Positions 1,401-47,006 of a DNA stretch of 64,000 bases are shown here, one piece after another. The stretch is from Adineta vaga (lineage: Eukaryota; Animalia; Rotifera). Both the position numbers and the translations under genes were made by a program. Below the pieces are notes generated by a model. That model was given only the letters and a program-made list of their open reading frames with translations, made no database searches and was not told where the DNA came from. The stretch spans positions 12,524,001 through 12,588,000 of the forward strand of contig CP075493.1 of the NCBI GenBank assembly GCA_021613535.1, written 5' to 3'. Every line of letters begins with the position of its first letter. Within the stretch, counting starts at the first letter, position 1.

Positions 1401-1877
1401 AGAGAAACTAATGTTTTTCATAAAAGAAACGAGAAAGTACTTGTATCTAAATAGAGACAAGCATCCCAATGCTTCTTTACAGGAATACTATAAAATAAGA
1501 AATCACCCGCTGAGATAGAATTTTCAAAATTCATTCAAAGTCATATAATCCACATCCTTGAGATTTTATAGAGACGATTTGTTCTACACCTGAAATATCT
1601 TCTCCCTTTGTCGTTGTGTTTGTCAGTACTTTCTTCCCACCTTCTCTTTTTCACAACTATGATTTCTATAATAAGTCAGCTCTATTTTAATCCAGTTTGT
1701 CTTGTAATTGAATTTGTTTTCAAAAAGATGACAAGCAACAAGAAATGAATTAGATTTATGCGCTTGACAGCCGACAGTGATTATTAAATATCATTCTGGA
1801 CAAAAAAATATTGTGAAGGAAGTAAGAATTGTTTATCAATTGCTCGAAAGTATTTCTATCTTCTCATTCATTTCCAA

Positions 1878-2816
1878 ATGGACTACATTCAAACATTACT
1901 ATCAGTACAGACATATTTATACAGAATAGGTGGTGCAATTATAATGGTTGCTGGATGTCTAGGTTGTATACTCAGTTTAATGATCTTTTCAAAGAAGAAT
2001 CTTCGCAAAAATCCATGTTCATTCTATTTTATTGCATACAATTTTGCCAATCTTTGTCAACTCACTCTGTTACATATGCAGGGAATGTTAGCATACGGTT
2101 ACAATATCGATATTTCAACATTCAACGACAGTTTCTGTCGTATCGATTGTTATCTAGGATATGTATTGGATATTCTCAGTCCATTCTATCTGATTTTAGC
2201 CTCCATCGATCGAATGGTAGTCACTTCACGAGATGCACGTATACGCCGTCATAGTACTCATCAACTTGCCTATAAATGCATTATTGGTGGCTCAATAGTT
2301 TGGATGTTAATCCACTCTCATACATTAATCTTCTTCAAAGTGATCGAGATCATCCCAAGCTATTTGGTATGTTATTCCGATTCGGATATATATTTAGCAT
2401 TTATAAATTACTATGCATTAGTGAAAACTATCTTAATACCAATAGTGATGCTGATTTGTGAAGTATTTACAATAAAACATATTCGATCAACACATCGTGC
2501 GACAGTTGTTCCTGCATCAACAGCAATTGGTAGTGCTGTCAATCCTACACGTTCGAAAGATCGTCAACTAATTGGAATTGTATTGATCAATGCCAGTGTT
2601 TACATCATTTTTACTTTGGTTCCTGTCAGCGTTGCTATCTACAAACAAATCACTCAGTATCAAAACAAAAGTTTCGTAGAAAGTCAAGTGGATTCATTTT
2701 TGACAAGTATAAGCTCTTTTATTTATTTTATACCAATTTCAGTTAGTTTTTACATTAATTTAATTGTATCGAAAACCTTTCGAAATGAAATGAAAAATAT
2801 ACTTTTGTGCAATTAG
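1878..2816 (+). CDS. Intronless rhodopsin-like 7TM GPCR (orphan)
   Basis: 312 aa with seven hydrophobic segments; LRKNPCSFYF in ICL1, FCR in ECL1, LASIDR (DRY-like), FYINLIVSKTFR helix-8 end. Confidence 0.85.
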   Translation: MDYIQTLLSVQTYLYRIGGAIIMVAGCLGCILSLMIFSKKNLRKNPCSFYFIAYNFANLCQLTLLHMQGMLAYGYNIDISTFNDSFCRIDCYLGYVLDILSPFYLILASIDRMVVTSRDARIRRHSTHQLAYKCIIGGSIVWMLIHSHTLIFFKVIEIIPSYLVCYSDSDIYLAFINYYALVKTILIPIVMLICEVFTIKHIRSTHRATVVPASTAIGSAVNPTRSKDRQLIGIVLINASVYIIFTLVPVSVAIYKQITQYQNKSFVESQVDSFLTSISSFIYFIPISVSFYINLIVSKTFRNEMKNILLCN

Positions 2817-3117
2817 ACTATTCCATATTCAAGAGAACATTATAATCAGTCCAATATTGTGACCTCTCCTTGCTTGCTTTTGTCATCAAAGTTTCAATAA
2901 AAACTGCCAATATAATTATTCTGCCTTTTTTCTTACTTGTTCTTATAATAAATGGAATATAAGCAATACAAGAATATCAGTCTTAGATAAAAATTGATTC
3001 TCTTTCAAATAAGTATTTTAGGGAAATAATATAATGAAAATACGCAACTGTAACTTAAATTTACATGAAAGCAATACAAAAAATATCACATTTATGTCTT
3101 GTTGGTTTTCAAGATGA

Positions 3118-6100
3118 TTATTGATTAACATAAATGAAGCGTTGAATTTTCGGTGGGAATTTTCGTCTTTTTGTTCGTTGATTCCATCTTCTTCTTCGTC
3201 TTTGTATTCTTTCTAATTGATCGCTTGCTGGATCAATACCAAAACAGTATTTCAATGTATCCATCACAACAAGAAATAAGCAAACACATCCAACCATAAA
3301 ATAGCATAGATAACCAAATGATTTTGTTGTGATTTCATGTGCAACTAAACTTCGTGAAGCAATTTCACAATGATTACCAGAATAACTTGTACTCAAACAT
3401 TCACATTTATAGTCACCCACTAATGGTCGACATACACCATGGTTGGCACATGTGACATTTTCACAGTGATTTACTTTTCTTTCACAATGATCCCCAGTCC
3501 ATCCTGATTGACATACACATTCAAATGTGGTATTCGATGTTTCATTACAATGACCTAAACAAAGAAAAAACAATATTTTCTTCTTCTACTTCTAGAAATC
3601 ATAGTGTGTATGTCTATGAAAATACGATACCATTATTCCAACATGAATTTGACTGACATGGCCGATGATCATATTCACATGTTGAACCATTGAAACCTTG
3701 TAAACATAAACAAGAATAAGTATTCATGATGGTATTGTTATCGACACAAGTGCCATTATTTTGACAAGGTTTCATCATTTGACAAGGTGTTGCTGAGATG
3801 TTACATGTGAGACCAATTGTATGTTGTCCACAAACTGGTACAGTCATGATTGATGAAGGTGGATGACCTGAGACAATAGAGAAAATATATATTAAAGAGA
3901 GGAGAAAGAGGTATTAGATAGGTGAACCTGTAGTTAATTGATTCGTTGATGATATCATAGTCGAACTATGTTGTGTTGTTATTGTTGTTTCTATAGAGAA
4001 GATAAAAGTGAGATACAATTTGAAGTGACAATGAAGAGAGAGATGGAATACCTGTTTGATAAAGTAGACTGGTTCCTTTTGATGAGAGTGTTGATTGTAC
4101 GAGAAGCGATGTATGCTCGACTACATAGGTTAACTTACGGTATGGTAAAAAGCGATGAGAATTTACCTTTGATGACGGACGTGGAGAATGATTGTTGTGT
4201 TGTAGACTGATCTAAAGAAAAACATTTGACGATTCTCAAACTATTTCGTTTTTCAAAAGCTCTGCTATATTTACCACATAAGCGTGTTGATAACAGAAAT
4301 TTTTGAATACGACTATTATTTTGATCAACAGCATATATATTTCCGCGCGCATCAAAAGCCATACTCCATGGAAATAATAATTCCTTTGAAGCTGAATTAC
4401 TTCCATTACATCCAATAATACATTGTAAAGTGTTTTGTGTCGATCTAACAATGCGATGATTATTACTATCGACTATATACAAATACTTGTTGCCATCTAG
4501 CACAACACTACTCGGACCATTTAATAATGGACTACTTGCTCTCGCTGTGCCATTGGTGTTCCCTGATTGAAAAACTAAAACTCGATCGTTTCCATAATCT
4601 GCAACGTATAAATCAAAGTTGTCATCAACAAAGATTCCAGCAGGATTCGAGAGTCTATCCAATGTCGAATCAGCAGTGCCATTTCCAGCAACAATCGCCG
4701 ATATATCTACACGAGGATCATCTAACCATCGTTTTATGACTTTATGAAGTGAATGGACGGAGCAGTACAGTGAATTACTGATATCAACAAAGAGACCGTA
4801 ACAGGATGAATTAACATACATGACCGGAATGCTAATATTTGTATCTACCTTCCATTGATCGACAGTGCCATTCGCATCACCATTATCAACCAAAATATCA
4901 CCATTAATGGCAACATAAACAGATGCTGGAATAGTGATGTTGTTCAATATTTCTTTTCTTATGTTCATAGAACCGTTCAGCGAAATTTGTATTTTGCTTG
5001 TTTGTCCATGAAAAATATAGATTGAATTATTTTTCGTAATAAACATTGCGACAGGTTTGCTATCAGTCGTAGTTATATTCATAAATGTTGTTGTATTCTC
5101 ATCCCAAGTTGCGAATGAACAAAACCTCAGTTGGTTGTATGATGTCGCTACAAAATAGAAAAACAGAAGTAGACGTGCATCGTTTGAAGATTCTGATAAA
5201 AGAAGCGTTTACCTTTTGTATTATTCAACAGGAGAAACTTTTCAACTAAACTACTATTCCGATCAGTAACATAAATGTTTCCACGAACATCAAAAGCCAT
5301 ACTCCAAGGATATGATAATACACTTGAACCTGAACTAATTTCATAACAACCAATAATGCATCGAAATTCGTTTTGAGTCGATCTGATAACTCGATGATTA
5401 TTACTGTCGACTATATACAAATATTTGTTGCCATCTAACACAACACTACTTGGACCATTTAATAATGGACTACTTGCTCTCGTTGTGCCATTGATGTTCC
5501 CTGATTGAAAAACTAAAACTCGATCGTTTCCATAATCTGCAACGTACAATTCAAAGTTGTCATCAACAAAGATTCCAGCAGGATTCGAGAGTCTGTCCAA
5601 TGTCGAATCAGCAGTGCCATTTCCAGCAACAATTGCCGATATATCTACACGAGGATCATCTAACCATCGTTTTATGACTTTATGAAGCGAATGGACGGAA
5701 CAGTACAGTGAATTACTGATATCAACAAAGAGACCATAACAGGATGAATTAACATACATGACCGGAATGCTAGTATTTGTATGTACCGTCCATTGATCGA
5801 CAGTGCCATTCGCATCACCATTATCAACCAAAATGTCATCGTTTAAAGTAATAAATATAGAGGTTGGATGGATCAGACTATTGTATGTTATGCTCTGTGC
5901 ATGAATAGATTTATTAAACCAGATTTGTAGTAGACTATTGTTACGATCAACGGCATAGACGGAGTCAACTTGATCCAAAAAAATACCATAAAGTTCGCTA
6001 CTGCCTGTATCATTAATTCTGAAACTAACTTGTGTCGGATTCCAAGTAGCTAATGAATTCAAGTTTGGTTCATTATATGAGATATCTAAACAATAACAGT

Positions 6101-19044: not shown

Positions 19045-21171
19045 TTAAGTCGACTTCCATTGTTGTCCTTCATATGCTATCCATTTACTCAAAGTTTTGA
19101 CAAATTTCCGAGCATATAAATGAGTCAGCCAATGTTCAGGTAGATTCTCATAACCATAGTAAGCACCTGCTAATTGTCCATAGATAGCTGCTGTTGATCC
19201 TGTTTCATCACCGAGATTAACAACAGCAAGTGCACCTCTTTCAAAAGAATTATCATCACACCAAAAAGCCCATAAAGCTGCTTCTAAAGCATTGACAATG
19301 TAGCCTTTACCTCGAATTCCACCTTCATATCCACCTTTACGTTGATATGATCCTCTTGAGACTTTTAATATCTCCGACGACAGTGGATATTTATAAAACC
19401 AACTTTTGTGTTTCAAATAAAAATCTTTATCAAGTAATTGTTCCTTAGTTTCACTGTGAAGAGCTGCAACGATAAGTGCACTATAGTAACGACATGCATC
19501 ATAAGCAATTCGATCACCATGCGTAATCTCACCACTAATTCCTGCGAATTCTATTGCTTCAATAGGATATTTCCAGAAAAAGAGTGGTACAGGAGCTAAA
19601 CGCACTAGAGCTCCATTATCAGCTGCAGTTTCATCACTACAAAACGTATCAAATTTCTCCAGAAGATTTAAATCTGAAAGATAATCTAATCGTTCGAGAG
19701 GTATATTATTTTTATCAGCAAATTGTTTCTGACGACGTTCAAATTCACGCAAAGATTGACTGGTCGCTGCATCAATATCATAACACTTTCCAGTCACTGC
19801 CATATAACCATTTCTGTACCACCATTTGTAACGAACTAATTGATCATAAGGAATAAAATCACGACGTCCTACCAATGAATTTGCCAGACAAAGTGCCATG
19901 GAAGTTTGACTAGTAAACTAAGTAGAATATACTATTATTTATCCATGACCTGAGAACATGAGAGAACTATGTACCTGTCCTTTTTCCAGATTCCATGTTC
20001 CTCCTGCTTGTAGATCAGTAACTGGATGTTCAAGTAAATATTCTCGTGTTCGATATTCAGCCGGAGTACCAAGAGCATCACCCAATGCTAATCCAATCAT
20101 TGAACCTTGAATACGTGTCAAAATTTTATCATCAATATCATCAGAAGGATCCTGTATTTCACATTCCAATTGATTACGTATCTTGTTCGATCGATGATCA
20201 ATAAATTGATTTTGATGATCAAGCCATACTTTGTCTAAAACAAATATATGATGCTTGTTTTCCAGAAATAAACCGAGACTAACCTGAATGAAATTGACAC
20301 ATGGGATGGCTTTGCTGTGATTCATTAACCACTGAAATAAATGATAGATATTCGATATGAACATTGCTATTTAACAAGTCATACCTAATCGACTTGATCG
20401 ATTTCGCAATAATTGTGATTGAATTTTCTGATCAATAGCTTGCACTTCTACTTCGACAATATCATCTGATACAGTATCATTCGGTGGAGCCATTAGTCGA
20501 TGTGGAGGAATTTCTTCTTCCAAATGAATCATATGTAATCCATCTGCAGGACTCCATTTACTCCTTACACGAAGATATGTACCAGGCATAAGGAGAATTT
20601 CATTTTCATTCTCATAAACCGAATGTTGACGAATATTTTTACCATTTAAACATTCGACCATAAAGATCGTTCGTACACCTGTTCGACCAATAAATTGTTC
20701 GAGTACATCCATTGTTTCCGTACACGAACTAAAACCCCACCAGATATAATCTTTTTTATAGTGTTCACTTACGTCGCCATGTACACCGCGCCAAACTGTT
20801 CTTTTTACCGATGGTAATTTGTATAAGGCAGTTAGAAAAAGCTTTAGATAGGAAAACCATGGCGTAAGTTGTTCACGAAGTTCTGCACGAAGTGTTCGAT
20901 TGAGCTGTACATAGAGACTTTCATATGGTTGAGACCATTGTAAAGTATAAAGACGAATAGCAGCTGATTCGTCAATTGTGAGAGTGTCTGTTGGAGTGAT
21001 TAAATCTCGTTTTGCTAACCATACGATTCTATCAAGATCATGTACCAATTCTTTTATTCTTGGAATAGCTTCTTCAAGTGATACTAATGGTTTCTTTTCA
21101 TAACCTTCGATTGGCATACGAGGACGAGTTGGTTCTTTGTCAGCATCGATAAAACGATCGATAATACTCAT
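19045..21171 (-). CDS. ART + ADP-ribosylglycohydrolase (ARH/DraG-like) fusion, 4 exons, ~655 aa
   Basis: Exons 21171-20385, 20331-20284, 20234-19975 and 19917-19045 splice in frame at canonical GT-AG sites. ART: AIRLYT, VWRG, FSSCT, ENEILL. ARH: GLALGDALG, NGALVRLAP, ITHGD, ALEAALWAF, TAAIYGQLAGAYYG. Confidence 0.9.
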
Positions 21172-32237: not shown

Positions 32238-35200
32238 TTAACACGTTTTAGAAATAATATCAATATTGCCTGTTCCATAGTTGGTTACTAAAATATCTAA
32301 CCATTTGTCATTATTGATGTCTTCAAGTGCAACATATACAGGTCGAGCATCATATCCCATCAAAACTTCTGTTTGATTAACAAATGTTCCATCTCCAATA
32401 CCAAATAGAAGAATAATAGAATTTGAACCATAATTAGCAGTAATTATATCTAATTGTTGATCATTATTAATATCACCAGTAACAATGAAATAAGGAACAA
32501 ATCGAGGATCAATTAAATATGTTATGATTGATCCAAATGATCCATTTCCAATATTTAATAGTATACCAATATTACCAGTACCGTAATGTGCAACGGCAAT
32601 ATCCGTTTGATTGTCTTGATTAAAGTCGCCAACTGCAACGGAATATGGCATGGATCTATTACCAGTTGAAAAAGTTGTCTGATTTGAAAAAAATCCATAA
32701 CCTAGTCCGAAAAATATACCAATATTATTATAACCAGAATTGCCAACTACAATATCTGTTAAACCATCATTATTAAAATCAGCGACATTCACAGAATGTG
32801 GTAAGGAACCAATTCCAGTAGATAATGGCATTACATCGAGAAATGCTTTAGTAGATGTGCCAAGAAAAGTATAAACTCGAAAGTTATCAAATATAGTTAT
32901 ATCTAATTGACCATCATTATTGAAATCAGCGGCGTGAACAAAACTTGGATCAAAAAACAAACTATGATAAATCCTTGTTGGACTAGAAAAGTCGCCATTA
33001 CCATATCCCAACCACAAAGCAACAAAATTGTTATATCGATTTGTTATTGCAAAATCGAGTCGAGTATCGAGATTAAAATCACCAACAGTAATAGATAAAT
33101 AATCAGTTGAACTACCACCATGTGTTAATTTTGGACTTCGAAATGTTCCATTTCCGTATCCTAGATAGATGCCAAAATAACCTGTCGAATAATAACCAAC
33201 GACAATATCCATATTATTATCTTTATCAAAATCACCAACGGCTACAAAGCTTGGATTAATTCCTTGAGAAACGTAATATGTTGTTTGATTTGTGAATGTT
33301 CCATTACCGTAGCCTAAGAAGATGCCAATAGTATTTCCATAATAATTTGCAACAACAATATCCGTTTGATTATCATTATTAAAGTCACTAACAGCAAGAC
33401 AGATAGGCTCAGATCCACTATTCGTTGAATATGTTATTTGATTTGCAAATGTTCCATTACCATAACCTAAAAAGATTCCAATATTATTTCCATAAGAATT
33501 TGCAACAGCAATGTCCGATTGATTGTCATTATTAAAGTCGCCAATGGCGACAAATGCTGGATAAGAAGCACTATTCGTTGAATAAGTCATTTGTTTGTCA
33601 AAAGATCTATTTCCATAGCCGAGAAATATTCCAATAGTATATCCATAAGAATTAGCAACAACAATATCAAGATAATTATCATTGTTAAAATCAGCGATAG
33701 CAACTGCAGTAGGATATGAATTACTTCCTGTCGAACATATAACTGGATCACTAAATGATCCATTACCATATCCAAAAAATACTTGAACATTTTGTCCATA
33801 ATAATTAGCAACAATAATATCTGTTAAATTATCAAGATTCATATCACCAGTAGCTATATTTTTATAAGTATTTGTACCTGTTCGAGGATAATTAAATATC
33901 GATGTGAATGATAGAAGATTAAATCCAAGAAGAACACCTATATTATCAGTACCATAATTAGCAACAACTAAATCCGATCGATTATCATTATTAAAGTCAC
34001 CAACAGCTAAAGATTGTGGTTTAGAACCGGAACCAGTTGAAAAAAATCTTTGATTTGTAAAACTACCATTTTCATATCCAAGAAATATTCCAATACCACT
34101 AGTACCAACATTAACTGTAGCAAGATCAAGTATTTCATCATTATTAAAATCATTGGAAAGAATCATGATTGGTTGAGATTGAAAATCAGTAAAATAAGTT
34201 TTGTCTATAGTAAAAATTCCGCTACCATTTCCAAAAAATACACCGAAATTATTCGATCCATAATTCGATACTCCTATATCGGATTGATTATCATCGTTGA
34301 AATCGCCGACAGTTAAAGATGATGGAAGCGATCCATATGATGTTGAAAATTCAGTAATACGATTAAATTTACCTGAATCATATCCTATAAACATTCCAAT
34401 AGTATTGGTATCTGGATTAGCAACAATAATATCTAATCGTCCATCACGATTAAAGTCATCGGCAGCAACAAAATAGGGACCTCCTGCACCTGTTGAATAT
34501 AAAGGTCCGTCAATGAACGAACTACTGCCTGTTCCCAATAAGATAAATAGACCTTTACTTCCATAATTAGCAATAGCTATATCTAAATTATTATCATTAT
34601 CAAAATCAGCGACAAAGACACACATTGGATAAGAGCTTTGACCAACCCATTTAACGTTTCGATCTTGAAAGGTACCATCACCATTACCAAGCAGTAATCC
34701 TGTTGTACTTCTTTCATTATTCGCAGTGATTATATCTAATCGAGAATCTTTATTATAATCACCAACAGCCACAAATGTTGGATATGAAATTTCTCCTGTA
34801 GAAATTTTTGTTTGTTCCGTAAATGTACCATTACCATATCCAAGATATACACTGATATCATCAGAATAATAATTAGCAACAACAATATCTAATTTCATAT
34901 CATTATTAAAATCACCAATAGCTAAAGAAATTGGATTACTTCCAGTAGAATATGTTTTCGAACTTTTAAATGAACCATTATCATAATTTAAAAATATCAC
35001 TATGGTATATGAATAGGAATTACAAACAACAATATCCAACAGAGTATCATTATTAAAATCACCAACAATTGCAACATAAGGATACGATCGTGAACCCGTT
35101 GAATAAGTTATCTGATCAGCAAATGATCCATTGCCGTATCCAAAAAAAATGCCAATATTATGTTTACCATAATTAGTAACAACAATATCTAAGTTTCTAT

Positions 35201-36990
35201 CGTTATTTAAGTCACCAATAGCAATATAATTTGGATAAGATCCACTTCCAGTAGAAATTGTAATCTGATCAGTAAATGATCCATTTTCTTGACCGAGAAA
35301 TATACCAATATTGTTTGCATAATAATTACCAACAACTGTGTCTGGTTGACCATCATTATTTAAATCACCAATAGCCAAAGTATATGGCCCATTGTCCGTT
35401 ATATAAGAGACTTGTTCTCGAAAATCTGCTGTTCGAACACCTAAGAAAATACCAACATTATTCGTAGCATTATTTGCTACAACAATATCCATTCGACTAT
35501 CATTATTAAAATCACCAATTGTCACAAATTGCACACCAGTATTAACACCAGTTGTATAAGTTACTTGATCAGTAAATGATCCATTACCTAATCCAAAAAA
35601 TAAGCCAATATTATCTGTACCAGTATTAGCAACTGCAATGTCTTGTAAATGATCATTATTAAAATCAGCAACAATCAAAGAATGTGGATTCGAATTTGTA
35701 CCCGTTGAAAAAGTCATTTGATTGAAAAACGTTTCATTATTATTGGCAAGAAAGATGCCAATATTATTCATTGCAGAATTAGCAACAACAATATCAAGAT
35801 GATTATCACCATTAAAATCACTGATAGTGATAGAATATGGTCGAGATCCGAAACCAGTGGAATATATGTTAAGATTTGTAAAACTTCCATCGCCAATACC
35901 ATAGAATATACCAATATTGTTTGTACCGAAATTTGCAATAGCAATATCTAGATATCCATCCTTATTTAAATCAGCAACTGTCAATGATTTTGGTTCCGAA
36001 TCATAACCTGTTGAATATTTTAATAAAGATTGAAATGTTCCATCACCATTTCCAAGGAAAATACCAATGTCATTCGTACCATGGTTAACGACAGCTAGAT
36101 CAATTTTAGAGTCATTATTAAAATCTCCATTTGTAATTGCTATTGGTCGAGAAGAATCAGTTGAAAATATAATTGGAGATGCAAAACTTCCATCACCCTC
36201 ACCAAGTAATATACCCACACTATTAATTCCATAGTTTGCTACAGCAATATCCAAATAAGTATCGTTATTAAAATCGGCAATGGTTACGGCATAAGGAAGA
36301 GAACGTTTAGTTGTAGAATATGTTATTTGATTTTCAAATGTTCCATCACCTTTACCTAAGAGAATTCCAATATTATCTGCACCATAATTAACAACAGCAA
36401 GATCTAAATAACGATCATCATTAAAATCACCAACGGCAATTGCTCGACTACGAGAATTATACTGCATATCAGTTTTTGTTTTACGTTCAAATTTTAATAC
36501 ACAGGTTTTAACTAAATTATATCCGTTATTTCATTCTTTTTTATGAATAAAAACTAAATTGAACATACTTGGTGGTTGTGGTATGGTATAATAAACAACA
36601 ATGATACCAACAATCATGGCTATCGATGTAAATATACATGATAGAAAAACACGATTAGTCACAAATAGTAAAACTAACCAATAAAGAGATTTTCTATGAA
36701 ATAAAAACAATGATGATTAGGTACGATAAGAGAAATCCTACTGTAATACTTTTTCTCCGGAGTTGTAACATGGTTTATTTCGATATCAGCGTCATTTCGT
36801 GCTTTGTATTCATCTTCAATCGAACCAATAACTTGATTTGCCTTAGTAGAACTAATATTCTCCGAAAATGGATTATTGATTGCTTTCGCAATAGGATTCA
36901 GAATAATTATTTCGTCCTATAAAAAAATTCTCACATCAGTATTACCTATAGATTTATATGAATTCATACGTTTTCCAAATCAGATGACAT
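32238..36990 (-). CDS. Large FG-GAP/VCBS-repeat beta-propeller protein with an N-terminal membrane anchor
   Basis: 1409-aa exon with over 25 GDFNNDxxxDIxVxN repeats. Upstream small exons (MSSDLEN from 36990; TM VFLSCIFTSIAMIVGIIVVYY near 36590-36680) appear to splice in frame; the 5' structure is less certain. Confidence 0.85.
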
Positions 36991-37609: not shown

Positions 37610-38614
37610 TTATTTTTTGTTCTTTAATTCTTCGTAAGCTTTGGATATATTAAGACTCGAATGTATCCAATCAAAAAGTACGTAACCACGAAATTGTGAC
37701 ATATCATCCGTCGCTTTCTTCACTGTTTGTTCAAGATTTAAACCATCATCAATTGCACTCTGTACAATCTTTTGAAGTGTTGTAAGATAATCAATATGCC
37801 ATTTGAAATCATCTCGTTTAATAGCAACACCATGTCCTGGTATGATCCTTGAGTCTAAAGGTAAAAACTCATAAGCTCTTGTCAATGATGCCAATGTATC
37901 AACTAGATGACCATCTAACAACCATGGTAAACCTGGTTTTGGTGCGACAATTGGATTTCCAGTCCACATAGTCTTCGATTGAGGTTCCCAAATAAATAAA
38001 TCACCACCAGTTTGAGCAAAACCAAAATCAATAATCTCAACAAGTTTACCACCTAGATCGATTTGTATTTGACTACGATCACTGACAAGAATATTACCAG
38101 TTCGTGCTTTGATATCTTCAATTCCACGTCCTTTACCCAAATTTTGTAACATAAAAGTTTTATCTTCTTCTAAATGTTCATCAATATATTTTTTAGCATT
38201 TTCATGTTGAATAATCATTGTCGTTGAAGGTAAATACATATTACCATACCAATGATCACCATGACAACTTGTATTAACAGCAAATAGAATTGGTTTATTA
38301 TTTGCTATTTTTTTAATTAATTCTTGAGCTTGATGATTTAAACGTTGATTTAGAAAGGTTTCTATAAGTAAAACACCATTTTCACCAACAATTAAACCAC
38401 CACTAGTAGCGGCTGCGCCACCACTTGCATTCAATTGTTCAGCATCTTTTGCATAGAAAGCATAAACATCAGTTGCTAGTTTTTCACTAATCATTTCGAC
38501 TTTATTTCCATCCCAAACGGGTTGTTTTTCATCTTGTATTGATTCAACAATTTGTTGTTTATGACAATTACCTATGCAAACAAGGATAATCGAGAAAAAA
38601 AGCGCTAATATCAA
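37610..38614 (-). CDS. Metallo-beta-lactamase-fold hydrolase, bacterial type, with signal-like N-terminus, intronless
   Basis: NTSCHGDHWYGN (HxHxDH variant), IIPGHG. The ORF starts at TTG with no in-frame ATG before the hydrophobic leader. Confidence 0.8.
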   Translation of the reverse strand: MILALFFSIILVCIGNCHKQQIVESIQDEKQPVWDGNKVEMISEKLATDVYAFYAKDAEQLNASGGAAATSGGLIVGENGVLLIETFLNQRLNHQAQELIKKIANNKPILFAVNTSCHGDHWYGNMYLPSTTMIIQHENAKKYIDEHLEEDKTFMLQNLGKGRGIEDIKARTGNILVSDRSQIQIDLGGKLVEIIDFGFAQTGGDLFIWEPQSKTMWTGNPIVAPKPGLPWLLDGHLVDTLASLTRAYEFLPLDSRIIPGHGVAIKRDDFKWHIDYLTTLQKIVQSAIDDGLNLEQTVKKATDDMSQFRGYVLFDWIHSSLNISKAYEELKNKK

Positions 38615-39048
38615 CGAAGTTTACCGTGAGAACACATTATTTTACTTTTATTTAGAAATACTGTTCGACATGTTTTTGTTTTTTAAATAGATATAGTTAA
38701 GTATGACAATGCATTTTTTTTCCATGTTCATTTTCTGTTATTTACTTTCGATTTTAATGATAATGCGAAATTTTATCCCTTTCTTCTTTTTTAATTACGA
38801 GATAAACATAATGACAAGGCATATTTTTAATAGTATCGAGTATTGATATGATTATAAAAAATGTGAATCATAATGATCACAGTTATGTTTTCTTTCATTC
38901 TCTTGTTATAGATTCGTCCTTCATAATTGTGCATAATATTATGATGAAAGAAAAACTCGCTTTTTTTATTATTATGAATCTTTCATATACAAAAACAAAA
39001 ATCAAATTTCGATTTGCTGATTATTCGTGTTGAGTTCTGATGACTTAA

Positions 39049-41140
39049 TTAACTACAGTATTTCTGTGTATTATTTCTTCCATTAGAATATTGAAAATCA
39101 TTATCATCCTTGAAATATTCTAAATAATATTTATAGAGTTTTCTTGAATATGCATCTCCAATTAAAGTAAAATTGTTTTTAATCATATTTTTCTCAATTC
39201 CACATTGAATAAATGATTTAAAGATATTTAATGCATTTATAGTTGTATAATTACCCATGATAGCAATACCTTGTCACAAAAAAATAAGAGATTATTCATT
39301 TCGTTAAAAAATTATTCTTACCTAATGATCTAAAATTATTACCAACACAATGTGCACCAGCAAATGTCCATCCTCGACCTCGATAGATCTCTTGACGATC
39401 ATCCTTATCATTACATATGAAAAAATTATAACCAACATCAGCCCAACCTCGAATATCCATTTGAAAATTTTGTAAATCTTTTATTGCTTTAGTACACTCT
39501 TGTTGATTTAGAACTAGTTTTACATCGGCTAATTGTCGAATAACAATATGTGTTACCGGTAATGTTGTTAAATTTTGACGTGTTATATATGGACGTGCAT
39601 TCCAACTAGTTCGATTTAATATTCGTGGACAACCTGTAAAAAATAGTAAAAAAAAGTATTCTTTTATAATCAATTCGTAATTACCTAAAGGTAATCGATA
39701 TTCAATAAGATTAATTTTTTCTAATAGAGCTGTTGAATTCATTGCACTATGATTTGACGATGGCTTTTTCACAGTAAAAACATAAACAAGTGTAACAATT
39801 ACGACCGAGAGAATAATAACAGTTAATATTCCAATAATACTATAGAGAACGGATCTTCTTTGTTCAAATTTGACATAAGCTTCCGTAAATTTAATATCAT
39901 TTTCCGATGATAAAACTGTTAATGAACGTGATGTAGAATTGCTTTTTTCAATCTCTGGATCTTCACATTCTTCTAATTCAATTTCAATGGAAATTGATGC
40001 TTGAGGATCGTCTAAATCATTTCGTTTGATTGACGTAATTTTAAAAACACTAAATGGAATAATTAGAATTTCTTTTTCATCAGGTCGTGTTGATAAACTT
40101 TCGATATTAATTGCTGTCAAATTCTGTTTCGTTACATATCGACAGATACAAGAATATTGTAATGCCGATTGATTTTTTGGTGTATATCTCATTTGTGATT
40201 GTTGACCTTCACCTGCAAACATTTCTGCGACTTGTCGATCGAGTGATGTCGATAGAAAAGCTCGATTTAAAATATGACGATTGATTTCATATTGATCTAA
40301 ATCATTTGCTGTTATTCGCATTCCTCGATAACATATACCTTGATATTGATATTGTGGTAGATTTGGATGATAGATTAGAAGTGTAACAAGATGTACAAGA
40401 CAATTAACAAGACGATAATTCGATGAAAAAGTTTTTGTTTGATCAAAATATTCTAATATATACAAAGCTAAATCTTTATTGAGAACATGATAGAAGAAAT
40501 TTGTTAATGTATATGCTTTGATAAAATATGTGAGATAATCTTGTTTATCAATGGCTTCTTTGAAATATAATTCAATTGTTTCAATTTGTTGACGAATTTG
40601 TTCATCTTTCGAATTTTTTTCATTATCCATCGTTTTATTCATTAAATATTCATTTAAATAATAATGAATAACTTCAGCTAATAATTTCGATACTAAAAGA
40701 TGATTATCATACGTTTTATAAACATCAATTAATCGACGAAATTCTTGTCGTTTACCAAGTAAATCATCACCGATCATTGACCATTGAATATAATTATAAT
40801 CATCATTCAATGATAAGTTTTCTTGTTCAACAAATAATTGTTTTATTTCATCAGTATAAACTTCTTCATAAGGTGTTAAACTATGTCGTAGATTTCTTAT
40901 TGAATGGGCTGCGCCATAATCTAATAGAATTTTAACCATATCACGATGACCATAATAACATGCGACATGTAAACATGTGGAACCTGATGATGTTTGAATC
41001 TTATTGATAAGATTGATATTTCCGATAAATGGAAGGAATTTTTGAACTTTTTCAATTTCATTTCGTTTGCATAATTGATATAGGAAATCAATTATTTTCG
41101 AATCATTTTCACGATTATCCGGTGGTAAAATTGAAAGCAT
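39049..41140 (-). CDS. Ankyrin + ART + single TM + PGRP (Amidase_2-like) protein, 3 exons, ~662 aa
   Basis: Exons 41140-39685, 39633-39322 and 39269-39049. ANK GSTCLHVACYYGHRDMVKILLDYGA; ART CYRG, FLSTS, EKEILI; TM ~39770-39850; PGRP CPRILNRTSWNA, RGWADVGYNF, GRGW..GAH, SLGIAIMGNY. Confidence 0.9.
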
Positions 41141-45164: not shown

Positions 45165-47006
45165 TTGTTTCGAGAATACTCGCTGAGATGGAACGGTGAA
45201 GTATTGCCTTTGTTTATATTGATCTCGAAGTTATATCCTCTTATTTTTTTTAGTTTAAGTGAGAAAGGAAAAACTTCGCTTGAAAATCTTTCAAATGAAC
45301 TTATTTATGAAATATTCGAATATTTACATTTACATCATGCATTTCAAGCTTTTTATAATCTCAATGAACGATTTGACAATCTTTTCAAACATTTCAAATA
45401 TCCAATTAAAATCGATATTTCATCGATTTCAACATCGACATATGAACGTTATGCTCAACACGTTATTCGTCCACATGCTAAACGAATAAAATCACTTCGT
45501 ATATCAAATCCTTTTGTGAATGAAATATATCTACAACTACTTCCTGCAATATTAAATTTCATTCGACTTGAAGCACTCACCTTAACGAATATTGATGTAG
45601 CATATCTTCCAAAAATTTTAGATCAATTGTATTCTTTGTCAACTTTATCTTCATTAACTATTATATCCGATGATTATTTACATAAGTCAATTAATGTTTA
45701 TGAAAAAATATTTCGACTTCCCCGATTAAGATATTGTCAGATGTTGTTAAAAACATCTGAAAATACATTTTTTGATATTACTAATGAATTGAATACGATT
45801 GAATATCTTGTTGTAAATCAGACAGTTTCTTTTGATCAACTTGATAGTTTATTATCATATGTGCCGAAATTACAACGTTTATCAATTATTGATTTATATG
45901 AACTAAGCGATAGTCGAAGAAAAAGCAAGTCATTATCCTTGGATTTATTGACAAATGTTTCAATTACAGTGAAAAACATCGAGTTTAACGATTTTCAATC
46001 AATAGCTCGAGATTATTTTCGTCAAGTTCAAGTTTTACACCTTAAAGTTCAATGTAAAGCATGGTACAACGATGGAATACAATATCTAGATGCTAATCGA
46101 TGGGAACAATTAATTTCAACATATATACCAAATCTAAGTATCTTTGATTTCCAATATATTCATTACTTTCGTGGTGAAATTGATCGAGAAAATTACGACA
46201 CTTGTATAAGAAATTTCAATTCGATATTTTTCGTGAAGCACGAATGGCTCTTTGATTATCAATATCATCCACAGTCTGATACAGCTGTCTTCTTTTCGAG
46301 AAACCCATATAGAAGAAAAGACTATTTATTACATGGAGATTGGACGAAAAATATATGGGCATCAATGACTGAAATTAATCAAGATCCAATGCATCATATT
46401 TATTTACATAATTCAACTACAACGGAACAGTATGCGGATATTATTTCAAATGTGAATGAAATGTCTTTTGTGGAAAATTTGGATATCTCTTATCATTCAT
46501 TTGATGCTAATTCTCAGCTTATTTTTCCTGGAAAACAACTTACTAAAGTAAATATCTATTTTCGTGACTTTTCCGTTGAAGATTTAATTGAACTGATTGA
46601 ATTATCACCGAAAGTTCATACATTAAAGTTGGCCTGTTTGTCACTTAACCAAACCGACTTAATTTCAATTCAACAAAGTGATCAATTTCATAGAGTGTCC
46701 AAAACAAATAACATGAAGAAACTGACCATCGAGGATACAATTAGAGCAGAACAATTCAAATTAATTGTTGACTTGTTTCCTCAACTGGAGAATCTTAGTA
46801 TTGATTTATATAGACATGATCTAGAGTCAATAGCACATTATTTATGGGCGAAATTTGACAACATTTCTCGTCGTTTATGCTTATTGTGTATTGCACATGA
46901 ACGTGAACGTTTGGATGGAATCTTAAAAGATTTGATAGAATCGAACAAACTTCGTTCTCATTACTATGTGAAAGTTATAAGAAAAAAACTTTATATATGG
47001 TGGTAA
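45165..47006 (+). CDS. F-box-like/LRR protein (true start probably in upstream small exons near 45040)
   Basis: LENLSNELIYEIFEYL; DANRWEQLISTYIPNLSIFDF; ends LYIWW. Confidence 0.8.
   Translation: MFREYSLRWNGEVLPLFILISKLYPLIFFSLSEKGKTSLENLSNELIYEIFEYLHLHHAFQAFYNLNERFDNLFKHFKYPIKIDISSISTSTYERYAQHVIRPHAKRIKSLRISNPFVNEIYLQLLPAILNFIRLEALTLTNIDVAYLPKILDQLYSLSTLSSLTIISDDYLHKSINVYEKIFRLPRLRYCQMLLKTSENTFFDITNELNTIEYLVVNQTVSFDQLDSLLSYVPKLQRLSIIDLYELSDSRRKSKSLSLDLLTNVSITVKNIEFNDFQSIARDYFRQVQVLHLKVQCKAWYNDGIQYLDANRWEQLISTYIPNLSIFDFQYIHYFRGEIDRENYDTCIRNFNSIFFVKHEWLFDYQYHPQSDTAVFFSRNPYRRKDYLLHGDWTKNIWASMTEINQDPMHHIYLHNSTTTEQYADIISNVNEMSFVENLDISYHSFDANSQLIFPGKQLTKVNIYFRDFSVEDLIELIELSPKVHTLKLACLSLNQTDLISIQQSDQFHRVSKTNNMKKLTIEDTIRAEQFKLIVDLFPQLENLSIDLYRHDLESIAHYLWAKFDNISRRLCLLCIAHERERLDGILKDLIESNKLRSHYYVKVIRKKLYIWW

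Follow-up and report, generated by a model that had tools for sequence, protein, structure and literature searches.

In a 64,000-nucleotide stretch of genomic DNA from Adineta vaga, a bdelloid rotifer (contig CP075493.1, positions 12,524,001 to 12,588,000 of the forward strand; hereafter the window), a three-exon gene on the minus strand (39049..41140) encodes a single chain in which ankyrin (ANK) repeats, an ADP-ribosyltransferase (ART) domain, one transmembrane (TM) helix and a peptidoglycan recognition protein (PGRP) domain follow one another. Its predicted topology is type II, with the ANK-ART module in the cytosol and a PGRP outside that has lost its zinc ligands, and this predicted receptor design is conserved across bdelloid rotifers. 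A preliminary description, made from the letters of the window, had proposed the same architecture. Its observations stand as a whole, and its interpretation, a sensor that couples peptidoglycan detection directly to intracellular ADP-ribosylation or NAD consumption, is partly supported: of its parts, the analyses back the single spliced chain, the identities of the ANK, ART and PGRP domains, the lost zinc ligands, the type II topology and a GW...R pattern like that of PGRP-LCx. The genome assembly searched (G000, 100.8 Mb in 6 contigs) holds the window at C1:12,524,001-12,588,000; the window is AT-rich, with a GC content of about 30%.

The gene model comprises 662 codons (485, 103 and 72 whole codons in the three exons plus two split Gly codons) and closes with a stop codon at 39051-39049. 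Exon 1 (39685..41140, minus strand, as for all features of the gene) opens with an ATG at 41140 and carries the ankyrin repeats, the ART domain, an acidic linker, a basic juxtamembrane stretch, the TM helix and a stalk; exon 2 (39322..39633) encodes the PGRP domain over its N-terminal two thirds (CPRIL ... GRGW ... GAHC), and exon 3 (39049..39269) the remainder (IAIMGNYT ... FTLIGD) together with a family-specific Tyr-rich tail that bears a conserved Cys. Exon 2 begins in the middle of a codon, and neither a Met or start codon of its own nor a signal peptide is seen in its sequence. Both introns are short and have GT..AG ends: intron 1 (39634..39684) has 51 nt and intron 2 (39270..39321) has 52 nt. 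A mechanical open reading frame (ORF) of 614 aa extends to 39296 because intron 1 is in frame and stop-free, and its false end at 39296 is a read-through of intron 2. The pieces of the window tile exactly onto the full-length homologues P0011, P0015, P0020, P0034 and P0040, with junctions ...PLG|CP... and ...SLG|I.... The chain of about 662 aa in the preliminary description is thus recovered with the same exons, introns and codon number. Some 80 nt past the stop lies an AATAAA (38965..38970), a candidate polyadenylation signal judged by its letters alone.

Public sequencing runs show that both introns are removed. A 424-nt contig from run X1, which like run X3 is presumed to be RNA (a guess), joins 39188-39266, 39319-39631 and 39683-39714; with the stated shifts of the cut points allowed for, it removes exactly 39270-39321 and 39634-39684, and the skipped stretches have CT..AC ends on the plus strand, that is, GT..AG on the minus strand. 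A contig from run X3 also lacks intron 1, and the DNA run X9 matches the genome colinearly, with both introns retained. We considered a retrocopy as the origin of the intron-less contigs and ruled it out: exon 2 matches a single locus in the genome, and the contigs therefore come from spliced RNA. Taken together, the contigs of X1 form a tiling path over 39188-40048 that leads from exon 3 through the TM region and reaches the C-terminus of the ART, and a spliced transcript segment covers the TM-side part of exon 1, exon 2 and exon 3. Splicing across both introns is documented by the X1 contig; that one transcript carries the whole chain is a prediction. The run contigs differ from the assembly at 21 coding positions (allelic or strain variants), 11 of them synonymous and none at a catalytic residue.

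The cytosolic module begins with about two ankyrin repeats (about aa 15-95; 40856..41098), for which the Pfam families Ank, Ank_2 and Ank_5 score over their cut-offs, with a match at aa 20-92, and for which the AlphaFold2 model shows paired helices. The ART domain follows (about aa 120-392; 39965..40783), with an N-terminal helical part and a beta core. In Pfam, the window protein matches PF03496 (ADPrib_exo_Tox; 33 bits, cut-off 23.4) and PF01129 (ART; 25.9 bits, cut-off 22.3). Its putative catalytic residues R272 of Y-R-G (codon 40327-40325), S297 of S-T-S (40252-40250) and E355 and E357 of E-K-E (40078-40076 and 40072-40070) align in register with those of Vis, an NAD+-arginine ADP-ribosyltransferase, so that the R-S-E triad first read in the motifs CYRG, FLSTS and EKE is corroborated. 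Across 51 relatives (41-82% identity), S297, E355 and E357 never vary, and conservation reaches at least 90% at R272, T298 and S299. A profile built on the whole ANK-ART module retrieved mostly ankyrin proteins from the PDB, and an ART-only query and a fold search were used instead. The AlphaFold2 model of aa 1-400 has a mean pLDDT of 76, with the ART core mostly above 80, and its best Foldseek matches in the PDB are XopAI, Vis, C3bot, HopU1, ExoS, Plx2A, Tre1 and rat ART2.2 (E 4e-08 to 1e-04 against XopAI, Vis, C3, HopU1 and ART2.2). Motifs, profiles and fold all assign the predicted domain to the R-S-E (C3-like, ExE-type) clade of ARTs. The ExE form of R-S-E ARTs predicts arginine as the acceptor.

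A single TM helix (about aa 430-456; 39773..39853) has a hydropathy of 2.95 over 19 aa and is flanked by K..QRR before and KK after. About 430 residues precede it, and hydropathy reveals no N-terminal hydrophobic segment or signal peptide in the window protein; the absence of a signal peptide and the QRR ahead of the helix had both been noticed before and are upheld. For the 36 relatives with both motifs, the stretch of 15 residues on the N-side of the helix averages 4.8 Lys and Arg, as against 2.6 on the C-side, and the N-flank is the more basic one in 33 of the 36, equal in three and never less basic. The other side of the helix, which would be the ectodomain, has six conserved cysteines and two positionally conserved sequons, and sequons are denser there (2.1 per 100 aa C-terminal to the helix vs 1.3 N-terminal to it); all six sequons that had been listed after the helix (NHS, NST, NRT, NLT, NYT, NFT) are present, and a seventh, NNT, was found. 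Ankyrin repeats are typically cytosolic. Charge bias, TM helix and ankyrin repeats support a cytosolic ANK-ART and an external PGRP (N-in/C-out), and the type II topology suggested at the outset is likewise what hydropathy and the positive-inside count in the 36 relatives predict.

The PGRP identity of the predicted ectodomain rests on PDB matches, profile matches and homologues, despite a miss by Pfam on the exons. In phmmer searches, exon 2 matches PGRPs of known structure (amphioxus PGRP3, 4z8i, 2.8e-17; PGRP-LCx, 5.8e-13), and a family profile made from 14 homologue ectodomains together with the pieces from the window finds PGRPs at 1.8e-40; of its 176 positions the match takes in 1-145, up to FTLVG. 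The expectation of an Amidase_2/PGRP profile match is thereby borne out by the family profile and by exon 2, but not by Pfam, where exons 2 and 3 taken separately give no Amidase_2 match even at E up to 1; the ANK-less relative P0094, on the other hand, scores 60 bits for Amidase_2 (PF01510). Exon 3 alone finds in the PDB only a spurious match to a designed pentatricopeptide-repeat protein, because it is too short and too divergent. The fold was assessed on the homologue P0020 as a proxy for the window protein: the AlphaFold2 model of its ectodomain (P0020:483-658) has a pLDDT of 80.5, and Foldseek aligns it to PGRP-SA, LB, LCx and LE with TM-scores of 0.65-0.77 and root-mean-square deviations (rmsd) of 2.2-3.3 A.

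The zinc site of this domain is lost. In place of the IHH of canonical PGRPs, the first zinc-ligand region has IRQ; in the second, GD stands for the GH of paralogues and canonical PGRPs, and the canonical T-x-C-P-G zinc-ligand segment is replaced by the Tyr-rich tail. With the His, His and Cys ligands lost, the window PGRP is therefore not an amidase. The loss of the zinc ligands had been noted correctly, with one mistake: the tail was said to have no terminal Cys, and it in fact ends in a conserved penultimate one (KYCS). Scaffold residues of the family are near-invariant (W-N, P-V, DIGYNF, GRGW, GAH, N..S.G), and a 4-residue insertion precedes GRGW. The GYNF motif and the Arg of GRGW are kept, as first reported; this Arg and the GW that precedes DVGYNF are both common to PGRP-LCx, a receptor for tracheal cytotoxin (TCT). 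The GW pair is linked to specificity for peptidoglycan of the diaminopimelic acid (DAP) type. In PGRP-LE, Arg254, the equivalent of the GRGW Arg, acts in DAP recognition (PMC4309185).

Homologue searches returned more than 140 relatives, and all of the named ones are bdelloid (Adineta ricciae, A. steineri, A. vaga, several Rotaria, Didymodactylos carnosus); the atlas neighbours are Rotifera. In at least 50 proteins predicted in the genera Adineta, Rotaria and Didymodactylos, the ExE motif is followed by a TM helix, where one is predicted, and then by GRGW, and the relatives P0001 (A. ricciae) and P0011, P0015, P0020, P0034 and P0040 (Rotaria and A. steineri) share the full ANK-ART-TM-PGRP order at 60-78% identity. 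P0001 is the syntenic orthologue in A. ricciae (77-83% identity); its public model is mis-fused to the downstream gene for a metallo-beta-lactamase (MBL)-fold protein, the same neighbour as in the window, and synteny is therefore conserved. A subfamily without ankyrin repeats (P0094, P0103, P0086, P0090) has the order ART-TM-PGRP and a more canonical PGRP, and in some paralogues His is retained at zinc-ligand positions one and two, or the canonical IHHT..C..C segment is. Many public bdelloid models end in ...SLGKN.F.F, the read-through of the conserved intron 2: P0002, P0003, P0005, P0007, P0013, P0014, P0018, P0035, P0037 and others lack the last third of the PGRP, and some of these read-through models receive no PF01510 call. 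Such truncation at intron 2, or fusion to neighbouring genes, hides the architecture from domain censuses.

Outside bdelloids, no ART-linked PGRP was found among the best 150 of 13,588 PGRP-profile matches (1.84 billion representatives), and ten long PGRP matches from outside the family, checked in Pfam, had no ART. Restriction of the architecture to bdelloids is not proven, and monogonont rotifers may carry it too. Full-text searches found no description of an ART-PGRP fusion, within the literature searchable. Family members are unnamed or bear automatic names only. The claim that this architecture had not been described in animals thus holds as regards papers, but more than 50 such predicted bdelloid proteins are already public under automatic names; because they sit in public proteomes, the architecture is uncharacterised, not unseen.

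Within the A. vaga genome, the window gene is the only ART-linked PGRP. The sole other PGRP match, locus L002 (G000:C6:7866500-7873000, ORF 3452..3691(-) and following), encodes a secreted PGRP of the canonical type, which starts like a signal peptide and has an intact VIHHT zinc-ligand motif. ART-like matches number at least 88 and ADP-ribosylglycohydrolase (ARH) matches 40. The closest paralogue, on chromosome/contig 5 (L001, G000:C5:3625000-3630500), is 66% identical in the ART; downstream of its ANK-ART-TM ORF (2595..4091(-)), and on that strand too, comes an NHL-propeller ORF of 281 aa after a gap of about 170 bp (1576..2421(-); Pfam NHL, 1e-36). P0047, a public protein model of this locus labelled Adineta vaga, is identical to an ORF of contig 5 over the stretches that the two have in common; it splices the TM helix out and joins an aldo-keto reductase instead, and is probably a mis-annotation. 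Other bdelloid models place different domains after the ART-TM: an NHL propeller (P0044), leucine-rich repeats (LRR; P0089, A. steineri) or a GH16 glucanase/GNBP-like domain (P0283, A. ricciae); an ART relative in A. steineri, P0114, carries a CD225-type domain. For P0283, P0089 and P0114 the domain order was taken from gene models, without RNA.

A tree of the ART region built with IQ-TREE in 'quick' mode (71 rows) splits into a clade with ankyrin repeats and one without (SH-aLRT 100 each); omitted from it were rows with other or uncertain C-terminal domains, ANK rows without an ectodomain, the N-truncated P0089 and, among ANK-less rows that lack an ectodomain, two thirds. Members with a PGRP fall into both clades, and the NHL pair sits within the ANK-PGRP clade; ectodomains have therefore been exchanged on a conserved ANK-ART-TM chassis. 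The models with an LRR or GH16 ectodomain after the ART are a sign of a modular 'receptor-ART' family. Counted over the three aligned pieces of the window gene, identity is 0.69-0.76 in the cytosolic module, 0.61 in the PGRP and 0.38-0.46 in the linker, TM helix and stalk.

We hypothesize that the outward-facing, non-catalytic PGRP senses peptidoglycan and that clustering activates the tethered ANK-ART, which would then ADP-ribosylate arginines of cytosolic targets, a proposal on which our confidence is evenly balanced. In this scheme the gene product would be a type II single-pass membrane receptor with the extracellular PGRP as its sensor; in the cytosol, roughly two ankyrin repeats would lead to a C3-like, ExE-type (arginine-specific) mono-ADP-ribosyltransferase, and the latter would be the output. 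Polymeric or DAP-type peptidoglycan would cluster the ectodomains, by analogy with PGRP-LC; clustering would bring ANK-ART modules together, so that autoinhibition is relieved or modification in trans permitted; and the ART, using NAD+, would modify arginines on itself or on cytosolic targets recruited by the ankyrin repeats. The expanded family of ARH hydrolases could undo the ADP-ribose mark. We infer what the ligand and the substrates are, that the enzyme is active and gated by ligand, and that the protein has a role in immunity. A broader proposal, of bdelloid 'receptor ADP-ribosyltransferases', single-pass pattern-recognition receptors in which interchangeable ectodomains (PGRP, NHL propeller, LRR, GH16/glucan-binding) sit on an ART-TM chassis and gate, each with its ligand, an ARH-reversed arginine ADP-ribosylation in the cytosol, is tentative, and we think it rather less probable.

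Several points weigh against the proposed receptor. The one infection study found, with a fungal pathogen, reported little PGRP induction. The RNA-like contigs leave the 5' two thirds of the transcript, with the ankyrin repeats and most of the ART, uncovered, and the run itself is presumed, by a guess, to be RNA. On the side of the PGRP, Pfam Amidase_2 (PF01510) fails on the split exons and reaches 24.3 bits on P0020, under the cut-off of 26; the canonical PGRP disulfide lacks its first Cys and the canonical C-terminal segment is absent, so that the groove for binding may have changed, as it has in PGRP-LCa and PGRP-LF, which do not bind. As for topology, a sequon inside the ART, QN[LS]T, is conserved too, and sequons alone are for that reason a weak guide to the orientation of the chain.

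In one alternative the PGRP-like ectodomain would no longer sense peptidoglycan and would serve as a co-receptor or decoy (like PGRP-LCa and PGRP-LF) or bind another ligand, the ART being regulated otherwise or constitutive. The lost zinc ligands, disulfide Cys and C-terminal segment and the insertion before GRGW would fit such a change of function, as would the faster evolution of the ectodomain relative to the cytosolic part. However, the core scaffold residues are near-invariant in the family, the GW and Arg in common with PGRP-LCx are retained, and the homologue model superposes on PGRP-LE and PGRP-LCx (rmsd 2.4-3.2 A), so that we consider this unlikely, albeit the strongest of the alternatives. 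The same architecture and topology could also serve an executioner: on contact with bacteria, the ART would burn NAD+ or ADP-ribosylate an essential host protein, and the engaged cell would be killed or extruded, in a SARM1/TIR-like or toxin-like manner. R-S-E ARTs such as ART2 also hydrolyse NAD+, and the closest structural relatives of the window ART are cytotoxic bacterial enzymes, but at least 40 ARH matches in the genome fit a reversible modification, and N-terminal ankyrin repeats suggest recruitment of a specific partner; to us a killing function is a shade less credible again than a PGRP that has stopped sensing.

Two further readings bear on the chain itself. Were the topology inverted, the ART would lie outside, as in vertebrate ecto-ARTs, and modify extracellular or bacterial targets, with the PGRP in the cytosol. 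PF01129 is indeed the ecto-ART family, and PGRP-LE works intracellularly (PMC4309185). Yet there is no signal peptide, some 430 folded residues lie ahead of the sole TM helix, and the N-flank is more basic in 33/36 relatives and never less. The typically cytosolic location of ankyrin repeats and the six conserved cysteines and conserved sequons on the PGRP side point the same way, which makes an external ART very improbable. The architecture could, finally, be an artefact of annotation, the ART and PGRP being two adjoining genes or the PGRP exons a decaying remnant; Pfam gives no Amidase_2 on the exons, and many public models end at intron 2. But in the spliced contigs the exons meet exactly at the predicted junctions, the ART exon also holds the TM helix and stalk, exon 2 starts mid-codon without a Met, more than 50 relatives in three genera have the same order and the same C-terminal Cys, and the variants are biased to synonymous changes. 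We give an artefact almost no credence.

Other genes of the window lie on both sides of the candidate receptor gene. Immediately downstream of it, at 37610-38614 (-), is the MBL-fold protein already mentioned, which has a hydrophobic N-terminus, and at 32238-36467 (-) an uninterrupted ORF of 1409 aa contains about 25 FG-GAP/VCBS-type repeats (PF13517, 3e-194). A 613-aa ORF at 45165-47006 (+) has a weak leucine-rich-repeat match (LRR_14, 29.5 bits, under the cut-off of 40). About 20 kb from the receptor gene, at 19045-21171 (-), an ART ORF (PF01129, 1e-09) lies directly upstream of an ARH ORF (PF03747, 6.9e-46), forming a writer-eraser pair.

Bdelloids are noted for unusual pathogen defence, and a large, modular, bdelloid-wide family of this kind could be a major overlooked arm of their immunity. 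If the proposal is correct, the direct coupling of peptidoglycan recognition to arginine ADP-ribosylation in the cytosol would be a novel form of output for an immune receptor, and the window protein would be the first candidate ARTC-type enzyme for mono-ADP-ribosylation inside the cell under the control of a ligand. To our knowledge, transmembrane PGRPs signal via adaptor motifs and animal R-S-E ARTs act extracellularly.

The nearest functional parallel is Drosophila PGRP-LC (PGRP-LCx ectodomain, PDB 2f2l), likewise a type II single-pass protein with a C-terminal, zinc-less, non-amidase PGRP, with which the window protein has the GW, GRGW and fold in common. There are, however, key differences: the cytosolic tail of PGRP-LC is short, RHIM-like, IMD-recruiting and enzyme-free, whereas that of the window protein would hold about 430 residues of ankyrin repeats and R-S-E ART, and in the window PGRP the C-terminal segment is replaced by the family-specific Tyr-rich tail ending in Cys. 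The window protein may thus work like PGRP-LC without being classed as a member; ANK and ART fill its cytosolic part, in which no search for a RHIM motif was made. Catalytic PGRP amidases (PGRP-LB/SC, PGLYRP2, T7 lysozyme type) differ from it in the His, His and Cys zinc ligands that it lacks. On the enzyme side, the ART shares its fold and its R, S-T-S and E-x-E motifs with bacterial R-S-E ARTs (Vis, XopAI, C3bot, HopU1, ExoS, Tre1), but these are secreted or injected toxins without membrane anchors, while the window protein is the product of an intron-bearing animal gene, and its ART, joined to ankyrin repeats and the ectodomain of a receptor, is predicted to sit on the inner face of the membrane. 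Vertebrate ecto-ARTs (ARTC1-5; rat ART2.2, PDB 1gxy) share the PF01129 match and the R-S-E/ExE catalytic type; in contrast to the window protein, which has no signal peptide and a predicted cytosolic ART, they have a signal peptide, are glycosylphosphatidylinositol (GPI)-anchored or secreted, and are extracellular. The broader logic has precedents in plant LysM receptor kinases, which sense microbial glycans, and in the NAD-consuming immune domains TIR and SARM1: a pattern-recognition ectodomain is connected by a single TM helix with an enzyme in the cytosol, or NAD+ chemistry is the immune output. The window protein has no sequence relationship to any of these, and its output domain is an ART, not a kinase or TIR; if the proposal holds, its signalling logic would run parallel to that of receptor kinases, in a form not described in animals.

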